From the NCBI GenBank assembly GCA_024704765.1, contig JAKMXF010000076.1:1-32415 (forward strand): DNA of 32,415 nucleotides, given 5' to 3'. This DNA is from Oopsacas minuta. Taxonomy: Eukaryota; Animalia; Porifera. This document shows positions 20,099-32,415 of this stretch, one piece after another. Position numbers and translations under genes: made by a program. Under the pieces are notes generated by a model. The model saw only the letters and a program-made list of their open reading frames with translations. It was not told where the DNA came from and searched no databases. Positions within the stretch are counted from its first letter, which is position 1. The number at the start of each line of letters is the position of its first letter.

Positions 20099-23000
20099 AT
20101 GGCCTTACTGAGTGGCAAGCTTACGCCAATGAAACTTGATTTCTCAGATGATGCCAATGACATACCCGGGGGAGAAGATCTTGACCTCTTAACACCTGAC
20201 AACTCCTTCCTACACCTATCCCCTAGTATACTAACCCCCAATACGTCAGGTGATTTCCCTCTGTCCGCATCTACACTAGGCTCTTTTGCGGGTAATGATA
20301 GAAAAAATAGGATTAGTAGAAGGAGATCTAGCGTTATAGGAAGCTGTCTTACTCCTCCTCCTAAGCATAGACGGACTTCTAGACAGCTTAAGAATGATTC
20401 TCAATCTTCTATTCATGATACAGAGAAAGGTATTACGTGTATATGTATAATTGCTAGTCATAGTTTTCATGCTAACTTTAGCGTACTAAAATATTTACTC
20501 CTAAAAATTATGATACAGTCAACTCAAGTCTTATATTGTACAAATATGGTCCCAAAAAGTCAAAGTAGCAAAATTTCATTGGTCATACCCGAGTAAGTAT
20601 TGCGGTTCCTTAAGCTTCGATGTAACGGGAGTTGATTGTGTGTTGTGTATAACTCTATGTATCCATGTCTTCTGATATGAACTATGTATATACTCTATGC
20701 TGTTTTGCAAACTGATAGAATTTTATACGTGCATATTCATTAGAAAGTTTATTTCTGTATTAATGAGAACTTATCTATCCTAGATATAGAAACCCCAGAC
20801 GAATCTCCTATCCCCAGCACCACAACACTAGGTACACCCCCTTCTTCCTCTCAGAAACTAGGTACAGACATGTGTCAGCTGTGTCTCTTTGAACAACCAC
20901 AAACACCTAACACTTTACTGAAGAAAGCTCAAGAGAAACAGGAGAGTAGCAGTAGTGGTAGTCAGAGTTGTAGCAGTGATAATCAGCTGTTTACAACTCC
21001 TGTTAGTTATAATAATAGTTTCTCACAAGAAGAAGTGGACATTTCTTTTGATAAATTTCCTTCAAGGTATTTACAAACAGAATATTCGAGTACTTCTCTG
21101 GATTCTCATTTTTACTTTTGAGTTTCTTGTAAATTTATTGGGTAATTCATTGAGTTTTTTACAAGAAATTTGCAAACGCAATTTTACGAATCTACACATT
21201 TACAAATGTTCCATATTTTAGTACCTTCAGATCTAAATCACGTAGCAGACTACAGACTGCATTCACTGACTCTAGAGTAATACACCGCCGTCCTTCAGCG
21301 CGTAACATCAATCCATTTACTCCAGACCCGGTCGCTTACTCACGGAAACACAGTTCCTCTCTCCAACCCAGTCTCCATCAACTAAGTTCTCACAGAGAAA
21401 AAGATAGCACAAAGACGATAGAAGCTGGAGTAAGTGAAATGACAGAGGAGAGAGGTGAACGGAGAGATTCCAATTCTAATTCAGGTTCTAAACCTAAGAA
21501 ACTGGTACTTAGAGATAGCAATATCTCCAGATATAAACAGGAGTTCCACGAGGAGGCTCTTATTGGTCAGGGAGAGTTCAGTTCTGTTTATAAAGTAAGT
21601 TTATTTATTTTTGTTATTTAATCCGTGAAGCAACTCGTTAATAAACACAAACACTGATAAATGGCCCGATTGAATATAGAGCTCTGAATGCTATGCTAAC
21701 ACTGTTTTTTTAAGAATTTGGTTAAGAACTGAAAACGAATATTTCAATATTCTAAACACCTTTTCGGTCTGGGCATAGAGATAACCGAAGTTCGAATTAT
21801 TATTCAACTTCAGAGTTGTTACTAGAGCTGAGGAGTTTTGTCCTAGATTGCTACATACAATTCCCCCAGCAACCCCATGCTGAATCATTCATGTCACTAA
21901 AATAGGTTGCTGGAGCATGGAGGGCACCTAGCAAGCCTAGGTTACTGGATTATCCCTGTAGTCGCTTGTTAGAACCTTTGCACTTACTACATGTATTATA
22001 ACTTATATTTTCGCGTTGCATTTGCAACTTATTACAGTGAATTATTTCGGAAATAATCACATTATTTGCATTATATTTGCCTAAGGATGTCAGTGCTATC
22101 TGTAAATGAACAGAATACATCATATTCCACAAGTTACACATTGATACATGATATAACATATCTTTACAGCATCACATAAAGTTACATTATAAATTGTTCT
22201 AGAATATTCCAGTAGTCAGTTTCTGTTCTTATGACTTCTATTCAAACCTAAAATAGCATTGAGTTTACTGCAAAGAATATTCTAGATTTGAATATACACA
22301 ATAACTAATGTTCTAGAATATTCTAAATGTTCAATGCAAACCTACAGCAGATTTCAGGTTTATATAAATAATGTTAAACTTCGGAAAATTATTATAAAAC
22401 AAAATCTTCATATATTATCACGTTTACTATAACATGGCAGCCGCTATTGGTATTGATCTAGGCACCACCTATTCATGTGTGGGTATCTTCCAGCATGGGA
22501 AAGTAGAAATTATCGCTAATGACCAAGGAAATAGGACAACACCCAGTTATGTCGCATTCAATGACACAGAACGTCTGATCGGAGACTCCGCTAAGAATCA
22601 GGTTGCGATGAACCCTTCCAACACTGTCTTCGACGCTAAACGTCTTATTGGACGTCGTTTTGATGACCCTATCGTGCAGTCCGACATGAAATTCTGGCCG
22701 TTTTCCGTCGTAAACGAGGGTGGCCGTCCTAAAATCCAAGTTGAGTACAAAGGTGAAGTTAAGAAGTTCTTCGCTGAAGAGATCTCCAGCATGGTTCTCC
22801 TGAAGATGAAAGAAACTGCGGAGGCTTATCTCGGGAAAACAATCTCAGATGCAGTTGTTACCGTCCCTGCATACTTCAATGATGCTCAGAGACAAGCTAC
22901 CAAGGATGCCGGTGTAATATCAGGTCTCAATGTAATGAGGATTATCAATGAACCTACCGCAGCAGCTATCGCATACGGTCTTGACAAGAAAACAGGTGGA

Positions 23001-26000
23001 GAGAGACACGTGCTTATCTTCGATTTAGGTGGAGGAACCTTCGATGTGTCGGTCCTAGCAATTGATGAAGGAATCTTTGAAGTCAAGAGTACCGCTGGTG
23101 ACACACATTTGGGAGGAGAAGACTTTGACAACAGGATGGTTAGTCATTTCGTGGCTGAATTCAAGCGTAAAAACAAGAAAGATCTCAGCAGCAACAAACG
23201 AGCTCTCCGTCGTCTCAGGACTGCATGTGAACGCGCCAAACGTACTCTATCTCACAGCGCACAGGCTAACATTGAAATCGATACACTATTCGATGGGACT
23301 GACTTTTACACTACTATTACTCGTGCACGATTTGAAGAACTGAACCAGGATCTTTTCCGTGGAACACTCGAACCAGTTGAGAAATCACTTCGTGACGCAA
23401 AACTCGGCAAAGGCGAAATCCATGAGATCGTGTTGGTCGGGGGTTCCACTCGCATTCCAAGGATCCAAAAGCTTCTCCAAGAGTTCTTCAATGGAAAGGA
23501 ACTGAATAGGAGTATCAATCCTGATGAGGCCGTGGCATACGGAGCAGCAGTACAAGCAGCTATACTAAAGGGAGATACTAGTGAAGTTGTGCAGGATGTG
23601 CTTCTTATCGACGTAGCTCCTCTCTCACTTGGTATAGAAACAGCTGGAGGCGTGATGACTAACCTTATCAAGCGTAACACCACAATCCCTACCAAACAGC
23701 AAAACACATTCACTACATACTCTGATAACCAGCCAGCTGTAACTATTCAGGTGTATGAGGGAGAACGTGCAATGACGAGGGACAATAACTTACTCGGCAA
23801 ATTCGATCTGACTGGAATTCCGCCAGCACCAAGAGGAGTACCACAAATAGAGGTTACATTTGACGTAGACTCCAATGGTATCATGAATGTCAGCGCTGTT
23901 GACAAGAGCACGAATAAGATGGAGAAGATCACCATTAAGAACGATAAGAGCCGACTTTCTGAGGCTGATATCAAACGCATGGTTGATGAAGCTGAGAAGT
24001 TCAAGCATGAGGATGATGAACAACGTGAACGAATTGGTGCAAAGAACGGTCTAGAGAGCTATGCATTCCAAGCAAAAAGTACTGTCGAGGACGATAAAGT
24101 CAAGGATAAAATCACTGAAGAGGATAAGCAAGCTGTGCTTAACATCGTGAAGGAGACTGTAACCTGGCTTGACTCTAACCAAACCGCTACAAAAGAGGAG
24201 TTCGAAGGTAAACAGAAGGAAGTTGAGAAAGTATGTCAGCCTGTTATGATGAAACTCTACCAAGCTGGTGGTGAAGGTGGTATGCCAGGAATGCCCGGAA
24301 TGCCCGGAGGAATGCCTGGAGGAATGCCTGGTGGTATGGGTGGAATGCCAGGTGGCATGGGAGGCATGGGAGGTATGCCCCCGCAAGGAGGTGGAGACAC
24401 TAATATCGATCAAGTAGATTAAGTAGGAAGTCCTAACCCATCAGTAATGATGTTTCTTACATTAGCATAGATTTGCCCTCTATTCTGTTAGGAAATAGCT
24501 CTTATTGTTATTGTATTCTTGATCTTTTAGTTATTAAATTCTATTAATAGTAACAACTCAATTTATATCGGCGGGGGTGAAATGATAAATTTTAGGATCA
24601 TTGATTAATAGAAGTTGGGAGAGTTCTTATATAGTTATTACATAAATACTAAATACAGGTCTTAACTTATCTGGATCGTGGCTGCAAAAACGCTAAATTT
24701 GAACCTTATTAGTAAGCTTGCGTTCACATGAACAGTGAATACTGCTTTTGCAAGAGTACAGTATATGCCGGATATAAGAACACTAGCTCGATTAACCGAA
24801 TCTTTTGTATTGAACTCCATTGATTTTTGCTGGTAATAAGAACACGCCTCGCCGGATATAATAACGTTATTTGCTATCCATAAAAGTGTTCTTATAACCG
24901 GCATCCATTGTATACAGATTTATGCCTGTATGACGTCATGTTCTTAGGCGATAAGAAATTAGTAATATAAATGCTTGCCTATTTATAGTTGCAGCCATTA
25001 ATATAATTATGACCTGTTGGACTCATTTATTACATATTTTTGCTGCCATAAAGGACTAATATACTGACGTGTATACATGGAATAAATGATAATTTTAAGT
25101 GAATATATTTTCTAAAATATTATCTTCATCTTTGAATTCAGTATCGAATTCTAATTTCTTAATCTCCATCCCATTTTCCTTGTGAATCAGAGTTCTCTCT
25201 TGGTGTTTATTCTCCTGCTGGCATACTCCCATTTCCAATAGTCTTATTTCATTTGTTATCGCAAGTTCTAATACTTTAATTCGTTCACAATTCAAATTCA
25301 TTTTAATGTTAGCCTCTTCTACAAGAAATTTGAGATACTTTTCTTCCACTAGGATACTCCCATCTCTTCCAATTGGTACTTCTAGTCCCTGAGTGCTTCT
25401 CACTGCTAGCATTATCTTCTTACCAATTGAGAGGCCAGAATTCCTATAACCACATCCAACAGCTACCTGCAAAAAATATATACTGTTACATTTGTATATA
25501 CGTATTATTTGTACGGGTTGTTCGTGTGGTATGTGTATAGGTTATAGCTATTTGAAAAGTGGAAGCAGTTTTTCAGGGCTTCCCGTAAGTTAATAGTAGT
25601 ACGCTAAACATCCATAAACGGGGTACCATTTTTCAGCGTGGAAGTTACACTGCACACTCACTGACCATTTCGCCAGTCTTGTATGAGTCTATATGAGTGT
25701 TTGTCAAAAGCCATTATTCATTTGAAACATAAATTCGATATTTATGAGACAGGATTTTTGAGAAATATATTTTCTATTATTCTGTCGTCTCTGTACTCTA
25801 TTTCACTCACCTTCATAAGTGCTTTTGAACACTCAATATTTGCACAACACACGTGAAGTATTAGAGGTTCGAACTTTAATGTAATAACATTACATACAAT
25901 CGTAACCTCCCTCTTCAATGCTACAATTACGTCATCAATATTACATTCCTTATGTGATGTGTATATCCACTTACAGTTGTGTTTAATGCCAGCTGACTTT

Positions 26001-28153
26001 TCTGAGTATAATATTATTCTACCGGAACATGAACTAGTTGTGTAGAAGAACAGAGATGTGTTAATCACATCTATTAGTGATAGTATTGGTATGTCAATAC
26101 TGCCTTTCTTGCTACGATCTATCTGTCTTAATGTTTGTTGTTTGTTGTTAAGGAAATCCTTTGGTATGTTGTACTCTGGCATTCTTTTTGCCATTCTAAA
26201 TATACTAAATTATTTAAGTTGCTTTTCGTTTAATGAGACAATAATTTCTCATTTTTTATTACCATTTAAAAGTAACCCCATGGGATATACTTCTTAATTT
26301 TAATATTTGACCCCTTGGGCTTGAGGGGGCAATTATTTATAAGCGCTTCTCCTCAATAATCCAACCTTTTTTACCCCTGTGGGTTCCCAATACCAATTTC
26401 ACCACATTCTGTGGACCCCCTCCCATTGACTGCAATACAAATTTTGAGATCCTATGGACTCCCTGGTGTCGCCCGTAGACCATGTGGACCACCAAGCGGT
26501 CCATATATCCCAGGTTATGAACCGCTGATCTAATCTATACTCCTAAATTACTAAATAAAGAATTCTGGTGTCATAGAATGATTGGGGTCTATTTATCATA
26601 TAATCTACTCAATAGGTAATAAACAGATTAGATGGCCTTACATATGCTCTGAAGAAGAGCTCCAGACCAGTAGCAGGTTCTGTTGATGAACAAGCTGCTA
26701 TGAGGGAGGTATATGCTCACGCTGTGTTAGGAGTACATCCACATATTGTTAGGTATTATTCTGCGTGGGCAGAGGAAGATCATATGTTGATTCAGAATGA
26801 GCATTGTGATGGAGGGAGTCTCTCTAATAAGATTGTGGAAAATCAACAACAAGGTTAGTTAGTCAATGTTTTGGAAATGCAAGAGAGTTGAATTTTTTCG
26901 AAATTTTAAATAGTCAATTCTCTGAATCTGTTCCTAACTCATGGCCAAATAGAAGAGCTCGCAACGGCCCTATCCCGGCCCAATTCATATCTTCTCCGAG
27001 CTGACGACCAGAAGCCAGGACTCGAACCCGTTTCGGACATGCGACCTTTATCGACCGTCCGTTGGTTTTCGTGTTACCGTGATTCCACTGTAGCCCGAAA
27101 TCTCTACCAGGAATTATGAAGAAATAATCTGTAATTATATTCCATATATATAGGCGGAATATTCTCAGAGAGTGAACTGAAAGACATCTTATTCCAAGTA
27201 TCAAAAGGGTTAGAGTATATACACTCAATGGGGCTAGTACATTTAGACATGAAGCCTGGTAATGTGTTTATATCCTACGGGCATTCAAGATATTCTGGGG
27301 TCTCACGAAGCTCTGAGGATTCGTCTCAATCAGGAGACAGCAACGAGAGGACAGATCTCTGCACGAATACTCTTGCAGAAGAGGCAGGGATATCTCGCAT
27401 GTCTCCATTTGGTAGTAAACTTAGGCCTACGTATAAGATAGGAGATATGGGACATGTAACTTCTGCTAAGAAACCGCATAAGGTTGAGGAAGGTGATGTC
27501 AGATATCTAGCTTTAGAAATATTGCAAGAGAAATATCAGTAAGTGAGATACTATGAGATAATTATAATTACAGATAACTCCTGCTATATCGAAGCTCAAG
27601 GGACAGCTACTTTGACGGTTTGGGACCATATTTGTACACTTTCACAACTCGATATAAGTACTTGTGAAAGTCTGTTATTGACTAACTTAATACATTCTAC
27701 CCAATTTATAGACACATAAAGAAAGCAGATATATTCTCTCTGGGTTTGACGATATTCGAGGCGGGAGGTGGTGGCCCTCTCCCCAAAAACGGACAAGAAT
27801 GGCATAGAACACGAAACAACAAGTTAGGCAAGCTAGAACGCTACTCAGCTGACCTAAATAACCTGATCCATGAAATGGTGAACTCTGACCCCACCAACCG
27901 TCCGAGCTCAAAGGAATTAGTCGAACATCCGATCCTCTGTCCTACAGAAGAATTATCCGTCGCACAGCTGAGAAGAGAACTCAATGAGGAAAAACTTAAG
28001 AACGAGGTACTACTTAAAAAGCTTGAAGAAGCAACACGTAAATGTAGTTCCCAACCTTCTACAAAATCAGTTGATTCGATTCGTGTACCTGGACGCACGA
28101 AATTTCATCGCAGTAAAAGTTTCACAGAATTTCCATCTTTCCCATTGAACTAA
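20099..28153 (+). CDS. WEE1: Wee1-like protein kinase, 6 exons, ~683 aa
   Basis: join(20099..20429,20784..21066,21222..21594,26616..26853,27154..27538,27712..28153), 2052 nt in frame (an alternative in-frame acceptor at 21231 is possible). Wee-family motifs: [31 protein letters not shown]|[75 protein letters not shown], and a C-terminal coiled coil. Exon 4 is absent from the ORF track. Confidence 0.94.
20514..20640. mobile_element. ~125-bp Tc1/mariner-like MITE in WEE1 intron 1
   Basis: TIRs (ta)cagtcaactc at 20516..20525 and gagttgattg at 20629..20638 (9/10 match). The reverse complement contains gctactttgactttttgggaccatatttgtaca, matching the 27569..27675 copy. Confidence 0.65.
22196..22324 (+). 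promoter_or_regulatory. Three heat-shock elements (inverted nGAAn arrays) upstream of HSP70
   Basis: gTTCtaGAAtaTTCc at 22196..22210 (perfect), aGAAtaTTCtaGAtt at 22274..22288 (one mismatch), gTTCtaGAAtaTTCt at 22310..22324 (perfect). Matches the established HSF-binding consensus. Confidence 0.88.
22361..22368 (+). promoter_or_regulatory. TATA box of HSP70
   Basis: TATATAAA 37 bp downstream of the last HSE and 65 bp upstream of the ATG. Confidence 0.75.
22434..24422 (+). CDS. HSP70: Cytosolic-type heat shock protein 70, 662 aa, intronless, nested in WEE1 intron 3
   Basis: HSP70 signatures [22 protein letters not shown] and [14 protein letters not shown]; cytosolic RARFEEL motif; GGMP repeats; no signal peptide; C-terminus is ...TNIDQVD. 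Confidence 0.98.
25095..26194 (-). CDS. TYW3: tRNA wybutosine-synthesizing protein 3, complement(join(25095..25466,25811..26194)), 251 aa, nested antisense in WEE1 intron 3
   Basis: TYW3 motifs [50 protein letters not shown]. Donor AAG|gtgagt (intron starts 25810) and acceptor ttttttgcag|GTA (exon starts 25466), phase 0. Confidence 0.92.
26377..26527 (+). mobile_element. hAT-like MITE between the TYW3 start and WEE1 exon 4
   Basis: Degenerate left end ctgtgggttcccaa; right end ggttatgaaccgctg, like the 11604 terminus; internal homology to 17083..17207. Confidence 0.65.
27055..27092 (-). mobile_element. Second copy of the pogo-like terminal fragment (WEE1 intron 4)
   Basis: 32/38 identity with 1767..1804. 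Confidence 0.6.
27569..27675 (+). mobile_element. MITE copy in WEE1 intron 5 (family of 20514..20640)
   Basis: tacagataactcctgctatatcgaagctcaagggac...gctactttgacggtttgggaccatatttgtaca aligns with the reverse complement of the 20514..20640 copy. Confidence 0.62.
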
Positions 28154-28910
28154 AACAATCGAACTATAGTTTTGTACCAAAATGATCAATCTTACAGAAT
28201 ATCACCTTCAAATCTTGAACAGAATAATATTTGATTATTTTTACTCACGTAATTATCAGAGAACTATAATTCGCAAAGTGGATAGATAACTAGCATTTGT
28301 TGATCAGAAAATCAATATTATATTGAAAATGATTTTAATAACAGCACTACAGACTGTGTTGATTTTGATTCTACTTTTCTTAAGGTTTTCCTCGAATTAT
28401 TTCGCAGAATATGCTAAGAGCTCAATAGTTAAGGTGGGTAGAGTACTGGAATGGCGGAAAGTTGGTCCATAGGAATTTGGTCGCCGGGAAATCCCACACC
28501 AATAAAGCGAGGAGTGACTCAAAATTATCTAGAACAACGACGAATTTTCCCCACTACCATATTTCCTTCAATCAAAGTATCGATCTTCGAAGTACCCTAT
28601 TATCTACCAGTGGGGAAGTCTTAGGTAAAATCTAGAAACTCTAATATGTGTTTACGTTAATAATAGAACTAGTTTAGCTCGTTTAAGCCATATGCTTTAG
28701 CCTAAAAGGTTTATGGGATAAATCCCCGGATAATCGATAATCGTATTTAGGCTTTGGAATTTGTGTTTTTGTGAGAAATAAAAATTCCGGAAAAAACGTG
28801 AAATTTGTATTTTTTTGCGAATTTTCTGTACGTATCCAGACAATAGCACTTTATTATTGAAATATGATTAATTAATAATTAGTATTCCACATTACATTAG
28901 TACATACAAT

Positions 28911-29169
28911 ATGTCAGGATATTCTGCCAAGATGTCAGAAATGCATTTAGAGAAAGCGAAGAGAGTTGCAGAGTCACTTTTCTCAACAGGTAGTAATTTT
29001 TGTAATTTCATACGTACCATATTTATGTATGTTTGTTTACTTTTAGATAAACCAAAGGAGAAAAAAAGAAAATCCCGTTGGGGAGATGAGAGTCAGAAAG
29101 TTATAATTCCAGGCCTACCCACCATTCTTCCAGCAAACATGAGCGAGGAGCAAAATCAGCTTTACCTCA
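28911..29169 (+). CDS. SF1: Splicing factor 1 (branchpoint-binding protein), first two exons only: join(28911..28989,29047..29169,...)
   Basis: KEKKRKSRWGDESQKVIIPGLPTILPANMSEEQNQLYL matches the SF1 N-terminus (U2AF-ligand motif KRKxSRW followed by IPGxPTxxP). The 57-bp intron 1 has no stop, so the track ORF reads through it. Phase-1 donor A|gttagt at 29170. No exon 3 found in the window. Confidence 0.85.
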
Positions 29170-29329
29170 GTTAGTATATCATATTTTCCTAGTTACATAG
29201 CCAATGAAAACTATTTAGGATAATACGTAAGATAATTGTATGCAATTTTCAAATAAAATGCAATTGAATAGAAAAAGTATATTGTAAACCAGTTACTAAT
29301 TAACAGACTATTTTACTATGAAAGATCGT

Positions 29330-30601
29330 TCAAAAGAATTGTAGACAATTAGTTTTCTTATGACACACAACTATAATGTGTCCTGTGTTGTCTAGTGCTA
29401 TTCCAAATGGGTAACTGAACTCCCCGATACCCTGACCTGTTTTCCCAAACTTGTGTATCTGTTCTCCCTCCTCATTGAATACGTACACACAGTGATTACT
29501 GTTGTCACTCATAATGATGTTATTGTCTCTGTCTATGTCGAAACAGTTTGGATTGTTTGTTTGTTTGCCAACACCTCTAGTTATTAGTCTGTTGGTTAGA
29601 ACGTGATCTGAATTGAACACAAACATACACGGATCACTCCCATTTAGCACCAGTACTCTGTCTCTTGTAACCCTAACGTCACGTGGATACGTAAACAAGT
29701 CTATTCCTAGCATGGAATGGAACTTGAGTTCTTGAGTTAAGATTTGAACTCTATGATTATTACAATCACATACGTACACATTGCTATTTCTATCAGAGAC
29801 ATCTAGGCCACGTGGACTGTTGAACTGAGCTTCTCCATTCCCTTCACTACCAACACTCTTGATTAGTTTCCCTTCTAGCTCGTACTTATTAATGCAATTA
29901 CCAAAATATTGTGTAACAAACACTTTATTTTGAAATATACAGATACCATCTGGTTTGTTCATCTTCTCACTGAACATGAAGAGATAGTCTCCGTTACTTG
30001 TAAATACTTGTACACGATGGTTAAACATATCAGCTATGTAAATATTTCCAGTTTGGTAATGTACTGCTATACCTCTGGGGCAGTTCAGTTCTCCTGGAGC
30101 TTTCTTGTTTGTAGATTTCTTACAGCAGTAAGCAATAGGCAACTGTTTAGCCTTGTAGTTAGGTACAACTGGCTTCACTTGGGGAGGAAATGTCCGGGAG
30201 GGAGATATGTTAGTCTGACTGTTAAGCTTAATACTCCCTAGCTGTTCTATATCAGCTTCGAATTGATTGTTCCATTCAAACTCAATACTACTGTCTGTAT
30301 CAGCTGTTAGTTCTGTTATCTTCTTGTCAATAGCTGATTGAATTATTTGATGAACGTCAGTGAGTTTATTTGCGGAGAATATCTCTGCAGTGTGTGTTAT
30401 TTCTTTATTCAAAGTCTCTAGCAATTTATTCACTTCCTGATTTTTGTTATTATAATCTTTCTCTATTTGATCAATACGAGAGAGGAGGATACTCTCTCTG
30501 AGTTGTAGAGCTTCATGTGACCTCTTGAAGCAGTCTCGAATCTTACTTCTACCCTTTTTTACTTGTTCGATAAAGTTTCTGTTCACTGATACGCTAGCCA
30601 T
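29330..30601 (-). CDS. Coiled-coil + NHL-repeat protein, paralogue C3, 423 aa, intronless
   Basis: Complete ORF MASVSVNRNF...KTNCLQFF, colinear with C2; 37 differences in the 254-aa NHL region (manual count). Confidence 0.94.
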   Translation of the reverse strand: MASVSVNRNFIEQVKKGRSKIRDCFKRSHEALQLRESILLSRIDQIEKDYNNKNQEVNKLLETLNKEITHTAEIFSANKLTDVHQIIQSAIDKKITELTADTDSSIEFEWNNQFEADIEQLGSIKLNSQTNISPSRTFPPQVKPVVPNYKAKQLPIAYCCKKSTNKKAPGELNCPRGIAVHYQTGNIYIADMFNHRVQVFTSNGDYLFMFSEKMNKPDGICIFQNKVFVTQYFGNCINKYELEGKLIKSVGSEGNGEAQFNSPRGLDVSDRNSNVYVCDCNNHRVQILTQELKFHSMLGIDLFTYPRDVRVTRDRVLVLNGSDPCMFVFNSDHVLTNRLITRGVGKQTNNPNCFDIDRDNNIIMSDNSNHCVYVFNEEGEQIHKFGKTGQGIGEFSYPFGIALDNTGHIIVVCHKKTNCLQFF

Positions 30602-30880
30602 TTTGTATATTTCACTTTTGCTTAGCTTTGAAAACTTTACTATCTATACCCCTATATAAGAGCTCAAATATCATATAACAGCCTACAGGAATTTATTGCA
30701 TTATTTTGTGGTGTATAAATAAGCTATCTTATCTTTTTGAATAAATTTTCTACGAGGAGCTTCGCTTCGTGCCTCGATGTTTTGTAAGGACGAATATTTA
30801 CACGCGACTTCAAGTAGCGAAATTCGAAAAACAGAGTGCTCGATTACCCCGGTATAACCGTTGAAACTAAGCTCTGCAAC

Positions 30881-30970
30881 TACAGCCGAAACCAGTTTAT
30901 TCTTACTTATTGGTGTTTTATTGCTAAATTTCCTGCAAACGAATAATAAGAAAAACCGGTTTCGACTGTA
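30881..30970. mobile_element. 90-bp MITE with TA-terminated inverted repeats between NHL C3 and C4
   Basis: Left tacagccgaaaccagtttattctta versus reverse complement of right end tacagtcgaaaccggtttttctta; TA at both ends as in Tc1/mariner-pogo elements. Confidence 0.75.
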
Positions 30971-31356
30971 TTCAGAAATTTGTTGACTTTATATTCATAA
31001 AAACAACAAATAATTCATATGTGTGAAAATTGGATTCAGCATAGTCTATATATTTGTCAATTTATATTGAATTCTGTTTACTTTCTTGGTAAACAAGATA
31101 AATATGTTCTATAACACATAATACTTAGAATTAAGCAATGAATAATTCTAAGAATTGGGATATAGAAATTTAATAACTAGAGCCCCTGTTGGTATATATT
31201 TGAAATTTTCTTGCTCTCCTGGCAAAGAACCAAATAATATCTTTCGGCGGGATATTAAATCATAAGATATATAGTAACCACATAATCCCTATAGGCTCTT
31301 ATATAGGGGTATAGATAGTAAAGTTTTCAAAGCCAAGCAAAAGTGAAATATACAAA

Positions 31357-32415
31357 ATGGCTAGCGTATCAGTGAACAGAAACTTCATCGAACAAGTAAA
31401 AGAGGGCAGAAGTAAGATTCGAGACTGCTTCAAGAGGTCACATGAAGCTCTACAACTCAGAGAGAGCATCCTCCTCTCTCGTATTGATGAAATCGAGAAA
31501 GATTATAATAACAAAAATCAGGAAGTGAATAAATTGCTAGAGACTTTGAATAAAGAAATAACACACACTGCAGAGACATTCTCCGCAAATAAACTCACTG
31601 ACGTTCAACAAATAATTCAATCAGCTATTAACAAGAAGATAACAGAACTAACAGTTGATACAGACAGTAGTATTGAGTTTGAATGGAACAATCAATTCGA
31701 GACTGACATAAAACAGCTAGGGAGTATTAAGCTTAACAGTCATACTAACATATCTCCCACCCAAACCTTCCCTCCTCAAGTGAAGCCTGTTGTACCTGAC
31801 TACAAGGCTAAACAGCTGCCTACTGCTTACTGCTGTAAAAATTCACACAAGAACGCTCCAGGAGAACTGAGCCGTCCCAAAGGTATAGCAATACATTACC
31901 AAACTGGAGACATATACATAGCGGATTATTGCAACGATCGTGTACAAGTATTTAGCTGTAACGGAGACTATCTCTTCATGTTCAGTGAGAAGATGAACAA
32001 TCCAGTAGGTATCTGTATATCTCAGAATAAAGTGTTTGTTACACAATCGTATGATAATTGCATTAATAAGTACGAGCTAGAAGGGAAACTAATCAAGAGT
32101 GTTGGCAGTAAAGGGAATGGAGAAGCTCAGTTCAACAGTCCACGTGGCCTAGATGTCTCTGATAGAAATAGCAATGTGTACGTATGTGATTGTTATAATT
32201 ACCGAGTTCAAATCTTAACTCAAGAACTCAAGTTCCATTCCATGCTAGGAATAGACTTGTTTAAGCATCCATGTGACGTTAAGGTTACAAGAGACAGAGT
32301 ATTGGTGCTAGATAAGAGTGATCCGTGTATGTTTGTGTTCAATTCAGATCACGTTCTAACCAACAGACTGATAACTAAAGGTGATGGCAAACAAACAAAC
32401 AGTCCATTCTGTTTC
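31357..32415 (+). CDS. Coiled-coil + NHL-repeat protein, paralogue C4 (3' end lies beyond the window)
   Basis: ATG at 31357, open for 353 codons to the window end: MASVSVNRNFIEQVKEGRSK...GELSRPKGIAIHYQTGDIYIADYCNDRVQVF...GKQTNSPFCF. Not in the ORF track because there is no stop. Confidence 0.94.
   Translation, partial: MASVSVNRNFIEQVKEGRSKIRDCFKRSHEALQLRESILLSRIDEIEKDYNNKNQEVNKLLETLNKEITHTAETFSANKLTDVQQIIQSAINKKITELTVDTDSSIEFEWNNQFETDIKQLGSIKLNSHTNISPTQTFPPQVKPVVPDYKAKQLPTAYCCKNSHKNAPGELSRPKGIAIHYQTGDIYIADYCNDRVQVFSCNGDYLFMFSEKMNNPVGICISQNKVFVTQSYDNCINKYELEGKLIKSVGSKGNGEAQFNSPRGLDVSDRNSNVYVCDCYNYRVQILTQELKFHSMLGIDLFKHPCDVKVTRDRVLVLDKSDPCMFVFNSDHVLTNRLITKGDGKQTNSPFCF

Follow-up and report, generated by a model that had tools for sequence, protein, structure and literature searches.

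The window, a stretch of 32,415 nucleotides of the sponge Oopsacas minuta, carries a gene that, judged by its sequence, codes for a WEE1-family kinase, and the third intron of this gene holds two further genes, an HSP70 on the same strand and a TYW3 on the opposite one. Both guests lie wholly between the end of WEE1 exon 3 at 21594 and the start of exon 4 at 26616. The features are the following, with evidence in brackets:

20099..20429, plus strand: WEE1 coding exon 1, ATG at 20099, donor gt at 20430 in phase 1 (frame and GT/AG reading)
20784..21066, plus strand: WEE1 coding exon 2 (frame and GT/AG reading; tblastn against related loci)
21222..21594, plus strand: WEE1 coding exon 3, with the NINPFTP motif, the kinase-domain start and the Gly-rich loop, ending in ..GEFSSVYK
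21595..26615, plus strand: WEE1 intron 3, 5,021 bases, phase 0, gtaagt..aatag
22197..22323, plus strand: upstream region of HSP70 in which one predicted three-unit heat-shock element, TTCTAGAATATTC, occurs twice, at 22197 and 22311 (pattern scan)
22301..26268, no strand: block present a second time, in decayed form, on contig C320, with nucleotide identity of about 96% within genes (blastn and alignment)
22434..24422, plus strand (that of WEE1): HSP70, intronless, 662 amino acids, ATTAAA at 24533 (Pfam PF00012)
24755..24915, no strand: short dispersed repeat, flanked by the HSP70 and TYW3 3' ends (genome-wide, a first look gave 62 candidates, of which 40 were scored)
25095..25466, minus strand: TYW3 exon 2, stop codon 25095-25097 (PF02676 positions 134-210; boundary from a joint in run X4)
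25467..25810, minus strand: TYW3 intron, 344 bases, GT..AG (joint in a contig of run X4)
25811..26194, minus strand: TYW3 exon 1, ATG at 26194 (PF02676 positions 2-135)
26269..28822, no strand: segment without counterpart on C320, comprising a repeat, WEE1 exons 4-6 and the 3' flank (alignment)
26360..26535, no strand: short dispersed repeat, flanked by the TYW3 start and the exon 4 acceptor (193 first-look candidates genome-wide)
26616..26853, plus strand: WEE1 coding exon 4, beginning VINRLDG, with the catalytic-lysine strand (..YALKK..)
27154..27538, plus strand: WEE1 coding exon 5, with the catalytic loop (PDB search and a loose end in run X4)
27712..28153, plus strand: WEE1 coding exon 6, including the stop codon (frame reading and PDB search)

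The six coding exons of WEE1 add up to 2,052 nt in the frame reading, a multiple of three that corresponds to 683 codons and a stop, and canonical GT/AG dinucleotides stand at every exon boundary on the plus strand. The initial annotation had claimed that the kinase domain is split between 21594 and 26616 by a 5,021-base intron in phase 0, and the base-level reading agrees: the donor reads TTT TAT AAA followed by gtaagt, with 21594 as the final base of exon 3, the acceptor reads ctcaatag followed by GTA ATA AAC, with 26616 as the first base of exon 4, and both boundaries are in phase 0. A small correction concerns exon 4, whose end lies at 26853 in phase 1 rather than where the open frame stops. 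The other WEE1 introns measure 354, 155, 300 and 173 bases, and with a published genome-wide mean of 341 bases in O. minuta (PMC10280926), intron 3 is about 15 times the norm.

Protein searches for WEE1 were run exon by exon, including phmmer against the PDB. The tail of exon 3 aligns with residues 6-29 of human WEE1 (5v5y_A) and the second residue of exon 4 with residue 31, which places the start of exon 4 at residue 30, and because residues 29 and 30 are adjacent the join is exact; the earlier statement that the Gly-rich loop meets the lysine strand with no residues lost thus holds. Exons 3-6 cover 2z2w_A in order (3-25, 26-102, 107-202 and 204-280), and the best PDB match is WEE1 for each of them, with E-values of 0.036 for the short exon 3, 1e-33 for exon 4, 2.6e-21 for exon 5 and 1.9e-14 for exon 6, Myt1 being weaker in the same searches (1e-6 to 1e-4). 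The lysine of YALKK is kept, the catalytic loop aligns with human HMDIKPSN, and IGDMGH with human IGDLGH. The gene thus appears to be a WEE1-family kinase, nearer to WEE1 than to Myt1 or other kinases. Like human WEE1/WEE2 (1x8b, 5v5y, 5vdk), it has colinear kinase exons, the catalytic lysine, the HxD loop and D-x-G, but unlike these, the sponge protein has about 40 inserted residues that separate its catalytic loop from the GDMGH motif, and its long N-terminal part is peculiar to these sponges.

That the intronic HSP70 is complete and on the WEE1 strand, as initially proposed, is confirmed by a full-length match to PF00012 (positions 1-599 of 599, E 7.4e-256, 22434-24419 on the plus strand). 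The protein is 79-81% identical to named animal HSC70/HSP70 proteins, ends in ..IDQVD where EEVD is the usual form, and had no record in an exact-protein look-up; a predicted TATAAA lies upstream at 22361 (pattern scan). The antisense gene, too, is what it had been taken for, a two-exon TYW3 spanning nearly the whole Pfam profile: the minus-strand ORF pieces 26194-25742 and 25472-25095 cover positions 2-135 and 134-210 of the 211 in PF02676, with E-values of 3e-29 and 4e-15, and only about 420 bases separate the start of the gene from the exon 4 acceptor of WEE1. No matches came from Rfam and tRNA scans of intron 3. An AATAAA lies at 21640 in this intron.

The arrangement was compared with that of eight related loci in six further assemblies, which, to judge from synteny and a shared NHL family, belong to glass sponges. 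The order in all eight is IFT122, WEE1 exons 1-3, HSP70 on the plus strand, TYW3 on the minus strand and WEE1 exon 4, and SF1 is also present in all seven loci that reach so far. In 8/8 related loci the sequence reads ..GEFSSVYK, gt..ag, VINRLDGL.., with GT and AG placed at one and the same codon, and the intron measures between 4,129 and 11,749 bases. WEE1 exon 1 is 70-81% identical in every related locus that reaches it (tblastn), the HSP70 orthologues inside the same intron are 88-95% identical, and those of TYW3, in the same position, 59-77%. Exon 4 has 94-100% amino acid identity at a nucleotide identity of 76-86%, its dN against the relatives is 0-0.04 with dS saturated, and dN/dS of exon 3 is 0.035-0.07, so that purifying selection acts on both halves of WEE1. 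Since the layout and the splice sites have persisted through a divergence that saturates synonymous sites, the nest is old, and it was in place before at least seven sampled species diverged; the initial proposal was to date the insertion by synteny in related species, but the nest is no recent insertion that could be so dated, being kept in eight related loci. The HSP70 paralogues L025-L027 of other assemblies stand in other contexts and are uninformative on WEE1. In the demosponge Dysidea avara, the closest HSP70, the orthology of which is uncertain, stands by itself, flanked by a kinesin gene and a BTB-Kelch gene, a weak hint that the nest is confined to glass sponges.

A recent origin would have to be sought in the second locus on C320, where the HSP70-TYW3 pair occurs as a unit that directly abuts an SF1/NHL block, and from which a copy of the cassette could have entered intron 3 of WEE1 within the lineage of O. 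minuta. This is very improbable, as the pair is already within WEE1 in every other sampled species, and on C320 HSP70 and TYW3 have in-frame stops, with HSP70, TYW3 and SF1 all bearing stops or truncations. These defects, and a divergence of about 4% within genes as compared with saturated synonymous sites between species, mark C320 as the derived copy. The positions that correspond to 26268 and 28823 are neighbouring bases on C320. The C320 copy is a later partial duplicate of the WEE1 locus that has lost the 2.55-kb WEE1 part and is now decaying, an example of how nested blocks are copied and then lose the fragments of the host gene. Variant letters over HSP70 were also considered as alleles or editing and rejected, all but one of them matching the C320 paralogue.

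Four read runs were compared over 21300-27290, with their joints and best-supported loose ends listed. One run, X4, is RNA-like, with contigs heavy on exons and thin on introns. Over HSP70 its contigs are very heavy and confined to about 22300-24500, giving no transcript ends or strands. The TYW3 splice is found in an X4 contig as a joint 25464>25809 ('cut +2') with ends CT..AC, equal to the intron 25467-25810, and for the splice between WEE1 exons 4 and 5, a loose end at 27152 bears the last letters of exon 4. HSP70 and TYW3 are expressed as transcripts of their own. Among the joints and best-supported loose ends listed for the four runs there is no 21594>26616 joint, so that splicing of exon 3 to exon 4 is what we infer, with indirect support from the RNA-like contigs that keep to exons, the splice of exon 4 to exon 5, and the GT/AG sites and reading frames conserved in the eight relatives, and a word search with exon 3 returned genomic ORF pieces only and no transcript-derived protein. 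A joint 21482>26391 was discarded as a repeat or chance chain, its shorter side having 20 letters and landing in a dispersed repeat.

The missing junction, together with an RNA-like contig that is unspliced across 21571 to 22429, would also fit a WEE1 that is split or half-dead, with exons 1-3 and exons 4-6 expressed apart as two genes. This is very unlikely to be the case, as neither half would give a working kinase, with the Gly loop encoded by exon 3 but the catalytic lysine and the catalytic loop by exons 4-5, and exon 4 does not come with its own start codon context. Moreover, strong purifying selection acts on each of the two halves, all relatives keep the GT and AG, and no second WEE1 copy was found in the genome: the exon 3 and exon 4 peptides have one match each in the 61.46-Mb, 365-scaffold genome, at this locus, in line with the initial view that the two halves form one locus.

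It could also be argued that the 32-kb scaffold (C76) is chimeric, with the HSP70-TYW3 block wrongly placed between the halves of WEE1. The scaffold is short and terminates in a repeated NHL family, a block that is 90-96% similar exists on C320, and the short-read contigs are broken in the repeat at 26411-26462, where depth is 10-100x that of the surroundings and loose ends accumulate, so that local continuity rests on the PacBio/Illumina assembly and the agreement of the relatives. Raised depth and loose ends at 24754-24914 likewise result from the dispersed repeat between the guests. However, contigs of the DNA runs span 21300-21864, 21534-22170, 22043-22536 and 26432-26976 and thereby link exon 3 to the start of HSP70, and the intron to exon 4, reads of the C320 copy could be told apart at all variant sites but one, and the order is identical in the eight loci of the six other assemblies, where some of the contigs bearing the nest are 0.35-1.2 Mb long. 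With this shared layout a misassembly is very unlikely.

It is thus very probable that this is a genuine and old nested-gene locus, with one WEE1 gene that carries a same-strand HSP70 and an antisense TYW3 in intron 3. The RNA polymerase transcribing WEE1 would cross both HSP70 and TYW3, and ordinary GT-AG splicing would then remove the whole 5,021-base insert. HSP70 would be a unit with its own predicted heat-shock elements, TATA box and ATTAAA signal, and by the logic of the layout WEE1 transcription should read through the HSP70 poly(A) signal and meet oncoming TYW3 transcription. One may further imagine that selection keeps the nest for a coupling of stress to the cell cycle, in which the HSP70 promoter, firing within the intron under heat shock, or use of the HSP70 poly(A) site by WEE1 pre-mRNA would lower or truncate WEE1 transcripts. 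This is very improbable; if true, it would make the level of the G2/M brake responsive to proteotoxic stress, and convergent TYW3 transcription beside the exon 4 acceptor would form a second layer of control. The locus has deeply conserved same-strand and antisense guests in one intron of an essential cell-cycle gene and could lend itself to testing transcriptional interference in an animal from an early branch.

Nested genes have been surveyed in humans, and according to PMC3192792 about 63% of them are antisense (cited there), so that the initial remark that same-strand nesting is the rarer case applies only mildly, and about 41% have a single exon (that paper and surveys cited there). The WEE1 locus resembles human and Drosophila nests in that intronic guests have their own promoter and poly(A) site, with HSP70 being single-exon, and in that the host transcript comes to include the poly(A) signal of a guest on its own strand. 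Intron retention, exonisation and cryptic polyadenylation have been shown experimentally in human cells (PMC3192792), while at the WEE1 locus they are a possibility only.

Nesting in glass sponges is already known to be abundant, and the WEE1 locus adds one more case. In the sections of PMC10282587 consulted, 2,432 nested genes (12.4%) are reported for Aphrocallistes vastus, 'many of which are conserved', only 83 are recognised in the O. minuta gene set, extensive microsynteny is described between the two species, and glassin is nested in another gene in both; no mention of a WEE1 host with HSP70 and TYW3 guests was found in these sections. The main value of the locus lies in annotation, also with respect to a paper that discusses missing core genes: for the published O. 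minuta gene set, RNA-seq mapping allowed introns of up to 5,000 bases (PMC10280926), 21 bases below the length of WEE1 intron 3, so that this set may contain a split or truncated WEE1. From what these sections describe, automatic annotation tends to overlook nested genes of glass sponges, and likewise the WEE1 nest, which resembles them in having a complete, often single-exon guest in a host intron, conserved within a microsynteny block. Unlike the glass-sponge nests cited there, the WEE1 intron has two guests on opposite strands. In one relative (locus L032), a third gene, PSS, joins HSP70 and TYW3 in the intron.

One WEE1 gene with HSP70 (same strand) and TYW3 (antisense) nested in its third intron (21595-26615, plus strand) is the supported reading of this locus. 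Its six exons total 2,052 nt (683 codons and the stop), and their positions, like those of the guests and other elements of the intron, are as follows.

Features of the WEE1 locus (WEE1 exons from reading frame and GT/AG sites)
20099-20429, plus strand: WEE1 exon 1
20784-21066, plus strand: WEE1 exon 2
21222-21594, plus strand: WEE1 exon 3
22197 and 22311: two identical three-unit heat-shock elements of HSP70 (sequence pattern)
22361: TATAAA of HSP70 (sequence pattern)
22434-24419, plus strand: HSP70
24533: ATTAAA of HSP70 (sequence pattern)
about 24755-24915: short dispersed repeat in WEE1 intron 3
26194-25811 and 25466-25095, minus strand: TYW3 exons (Pfam and spliced contig)
about 26360-26535: short dispersed repeat in WEE1 intron 3
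26616-26853, plus strand: WEE1 exon 4
27154-27538, plus strand: WEE1 exon 5
27712-28153, plus strand: WEE1 exon 6

On the plus strand, exon 3 is read to end with base 21594 (TTT TAT AAA, then gtaagt) and exon 4 to begin with base 26616 (ctcaatag, then GTA ATA AAC). In a search of solved structures, the tail of exon 3 matches residues 6-29 of the human WEE1 chain 5v5y_A, and residue 2 of exon 4 is the partner of its residue 31. Adjacent residues are therefore encoded and nothing is lost, which, together with the boundary sequences, bears out the claim of the initial annotation that the halves join at exactly these coordinates with nothing missing. Protein comparisons were run exon by exon, and the best structure match of exons 3-6 was always WEE1, with Myt1 far behind; human WEE1 (2z2w_A) is tiled by these exons at 3-25, 26-102, 107-202 and 204-280. 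The guests are likewise inside the intron as had been proposed, as Pfam matches cover profile positions 1-599 of 599 for the complete HSP70 and jointly 2-210 of 211 for the two minus-strand TYW3 pieces. Rfam and tRNA scans of the intron found no Rfam families or tRNAs. The nested HSP70 ends in TNIDQVD (24380-24422); the canonical cytosolic co-chaperone-binding tail is EEVD.

The same arrangement is found in relatives, which were reached via the closest HSP70 and TYW3 proteins and then via their contigs. The order IFT122, WEE1 exons 1-3, HSP70 on the same strand, antisense TYW3 and WEE1 exon 4 recurs at eight loci in six other ENA assemblies, so the synteny check that had been proposed finds the nest there as well, and in all eight the splice sites fall at the same codon (GEFSSVYK, then gt; ag, then VINRLDGL). 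Exons 5 and 6 were each detected in six of the eight loci, with exon 4 partial and exon 5 undetected in L023, the sequence of L024 stopping early within exon 5, and, in L032, neither exon 5 nor 6 found in the 5.7 kb that follow exon 4; SF1 comes next in all seven loci that reach that far. The related introns measure 4,129 to 5,184 bases except in the most divergent relative, L032 (L032:5699-17688, ena:ERZ20067936:ptg000087l), where the intron has 11,749 bases and a phosphatidylserine-synthase gene as third guest. Judging from synteny and shared NHL/DUF5128 genes, the relatives are presumably glass sponges. The nearest HSP70 of the demosponge Dysidea avara, whose orthology is uncertain, is not nested and has no adjoining TYW3. 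At another related locus, L029 (L029:584-8155, ena:ERZ25071281:ctg49538), exon 6 is present three times and, like several SF1 5' pieces, alternates with NHL genes, in a flank that seems liable to duplicate in tandem.

Between the window and the related loci, the exon 4 protein is 94-100% identical but the DNA only 76-86%, with dN of 0-0.04 and saturated dS, and exon 3 has a dN/dS of 0.035-0.07. On these comparisons, selection keeps both WEE1 halves, and the nest is older than a deep split among the sampled species.

The possibility that the WEE1 halves belong to different loci did not hold, as the peptide of exon 3 and that of exon 4 have one match apiece in the O. minuta assembly (61,460,524 bases, 365 contigs searched), both at this locus. 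That of a misassembled region is likewise disfavoured. The stretch is covered by four sequencing runs of one study. Two of them, X1 and X2, are DNA-like with evenly spread depth, and their contigs bridge 21300-21864, 21534-22170, 22043-22536 and 26432-26976, so exon 3 is continuous with the beginning of HSP70, as is the intron with exon 4; the contigs are interrupted within the repeat at 26411-26462. The order common to the related loci is the stronger argument, and with the bridging contigs it makes a misassembly of this scaffold (C76, whose full length is the window) very unlikely. Contigs of three runs fit rightwards from 24540 but have 149 mismatched letters to the left of it; the copy on contig C320 aligns across this point without a break, so this would be a variant or a further copy. 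At 21369 in exon 3 the scaffold has C, both DNA-like runs have T and the RNA-like run has both letters, possibly an assembly error or a polymorphism. Run X3 has zero depth at 21500-22099 and covers the HSP70 region (22500-24300) at high depth with C320-type (pseudogene) contigs only.

The fourth run, X4, has the behaviour of RNA: contig coverage is extreme on HSP70, high on WEE1 exons 3, 4 and 5 and low in intron parts, and adapter letters occur among its loose ends. Illumina RNA-seq was part of the O. minuta study (PMC10280926). In one X4 contig the bases 25467-25810 are left out, with GT..AG borders on the minus strand, which confirms the 344-base TYW3 intron. Another, which begins at 27152, has the final 16 letters of exon 4 ahead of it, and this is the exon 4/exon 5 splice. 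Among the joints and loose ends listed for the four runs there is none from exon 3 to exon 4, and a word search with exon 3 matched genomic ORF pieces only, so we infer this key junction. One X4 contig is unspliced across 21571-22429; a contig over two genes does not establish a single transcript, and it carries no weight. In the published work, transcript reads were mapped using TopHat with -I 5000 (PMC10280926), and as the 5,021-base intron lies just above this limit, those gene models must have been built without guidance from the junction.

Nested genes are of a known kind, and the WEE1 nest is thus a further case of an arrangement already reported: for the glass sponge Aphrocallistes vastus, PMC10282587 gives 2,432 nested genes (12.4%), "many of which are conserved", treats about 10% nested exonic bases as normal across animal phyla, and puts the low number in O. 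minuta, 83, down to how that genome was annotated. Human nested genes are about 63% antisense and 41% single-exon (cited in PMC3192792), and host genes can undergo intron retention, exonisation and cryptic polyadenylation because of the genes nested in them, as PMC3192792 shows. From the gene arrangement, interference among HSP70, TYW3 and WEE1 is possible.

A second HSP70 and TYW3, each with in-frame stops, lie on contig C320 of the same assembly, where G000:C320:274782-283421 (places L018, L019 and L021) is the counterpart of window 22301-26268 and 28823-32415. Identity to 22301-26268 is about 96% within genes, the 2.55-kb segment 26269-28822 with WEE1 exons 4-6 is cleanly missing, and the counterpart of 28823-31982 (SF1 5' exons and the NHL pair) resumes one base later. 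Stops or truncations affect HSP70, TYW3 and SF1 there, including stops in the SF1 helix-hairpin exon. Since the WEE1-nested order is common to all relatives, the C320 copy is rejected as donor of the HSP70-TYW3 pair; it is a recent partial duplicate of this locus, now decaying, that has shed its useless WEE1 piece. Reads over HSP70 and TYW3 show variant letters that, with one exception, agree with the C320 copy. An intact SF1 helix-hairpin exon is found at a single place in the genome, about 1 kb into contig C120 (G000:C120:1060-1224); the SF1 place compared with it is window 28911-29171. C120 is probably the continuation of scaffold C76, whose end falls within an NHL repeat, which makes a truncated SF1 improbable.
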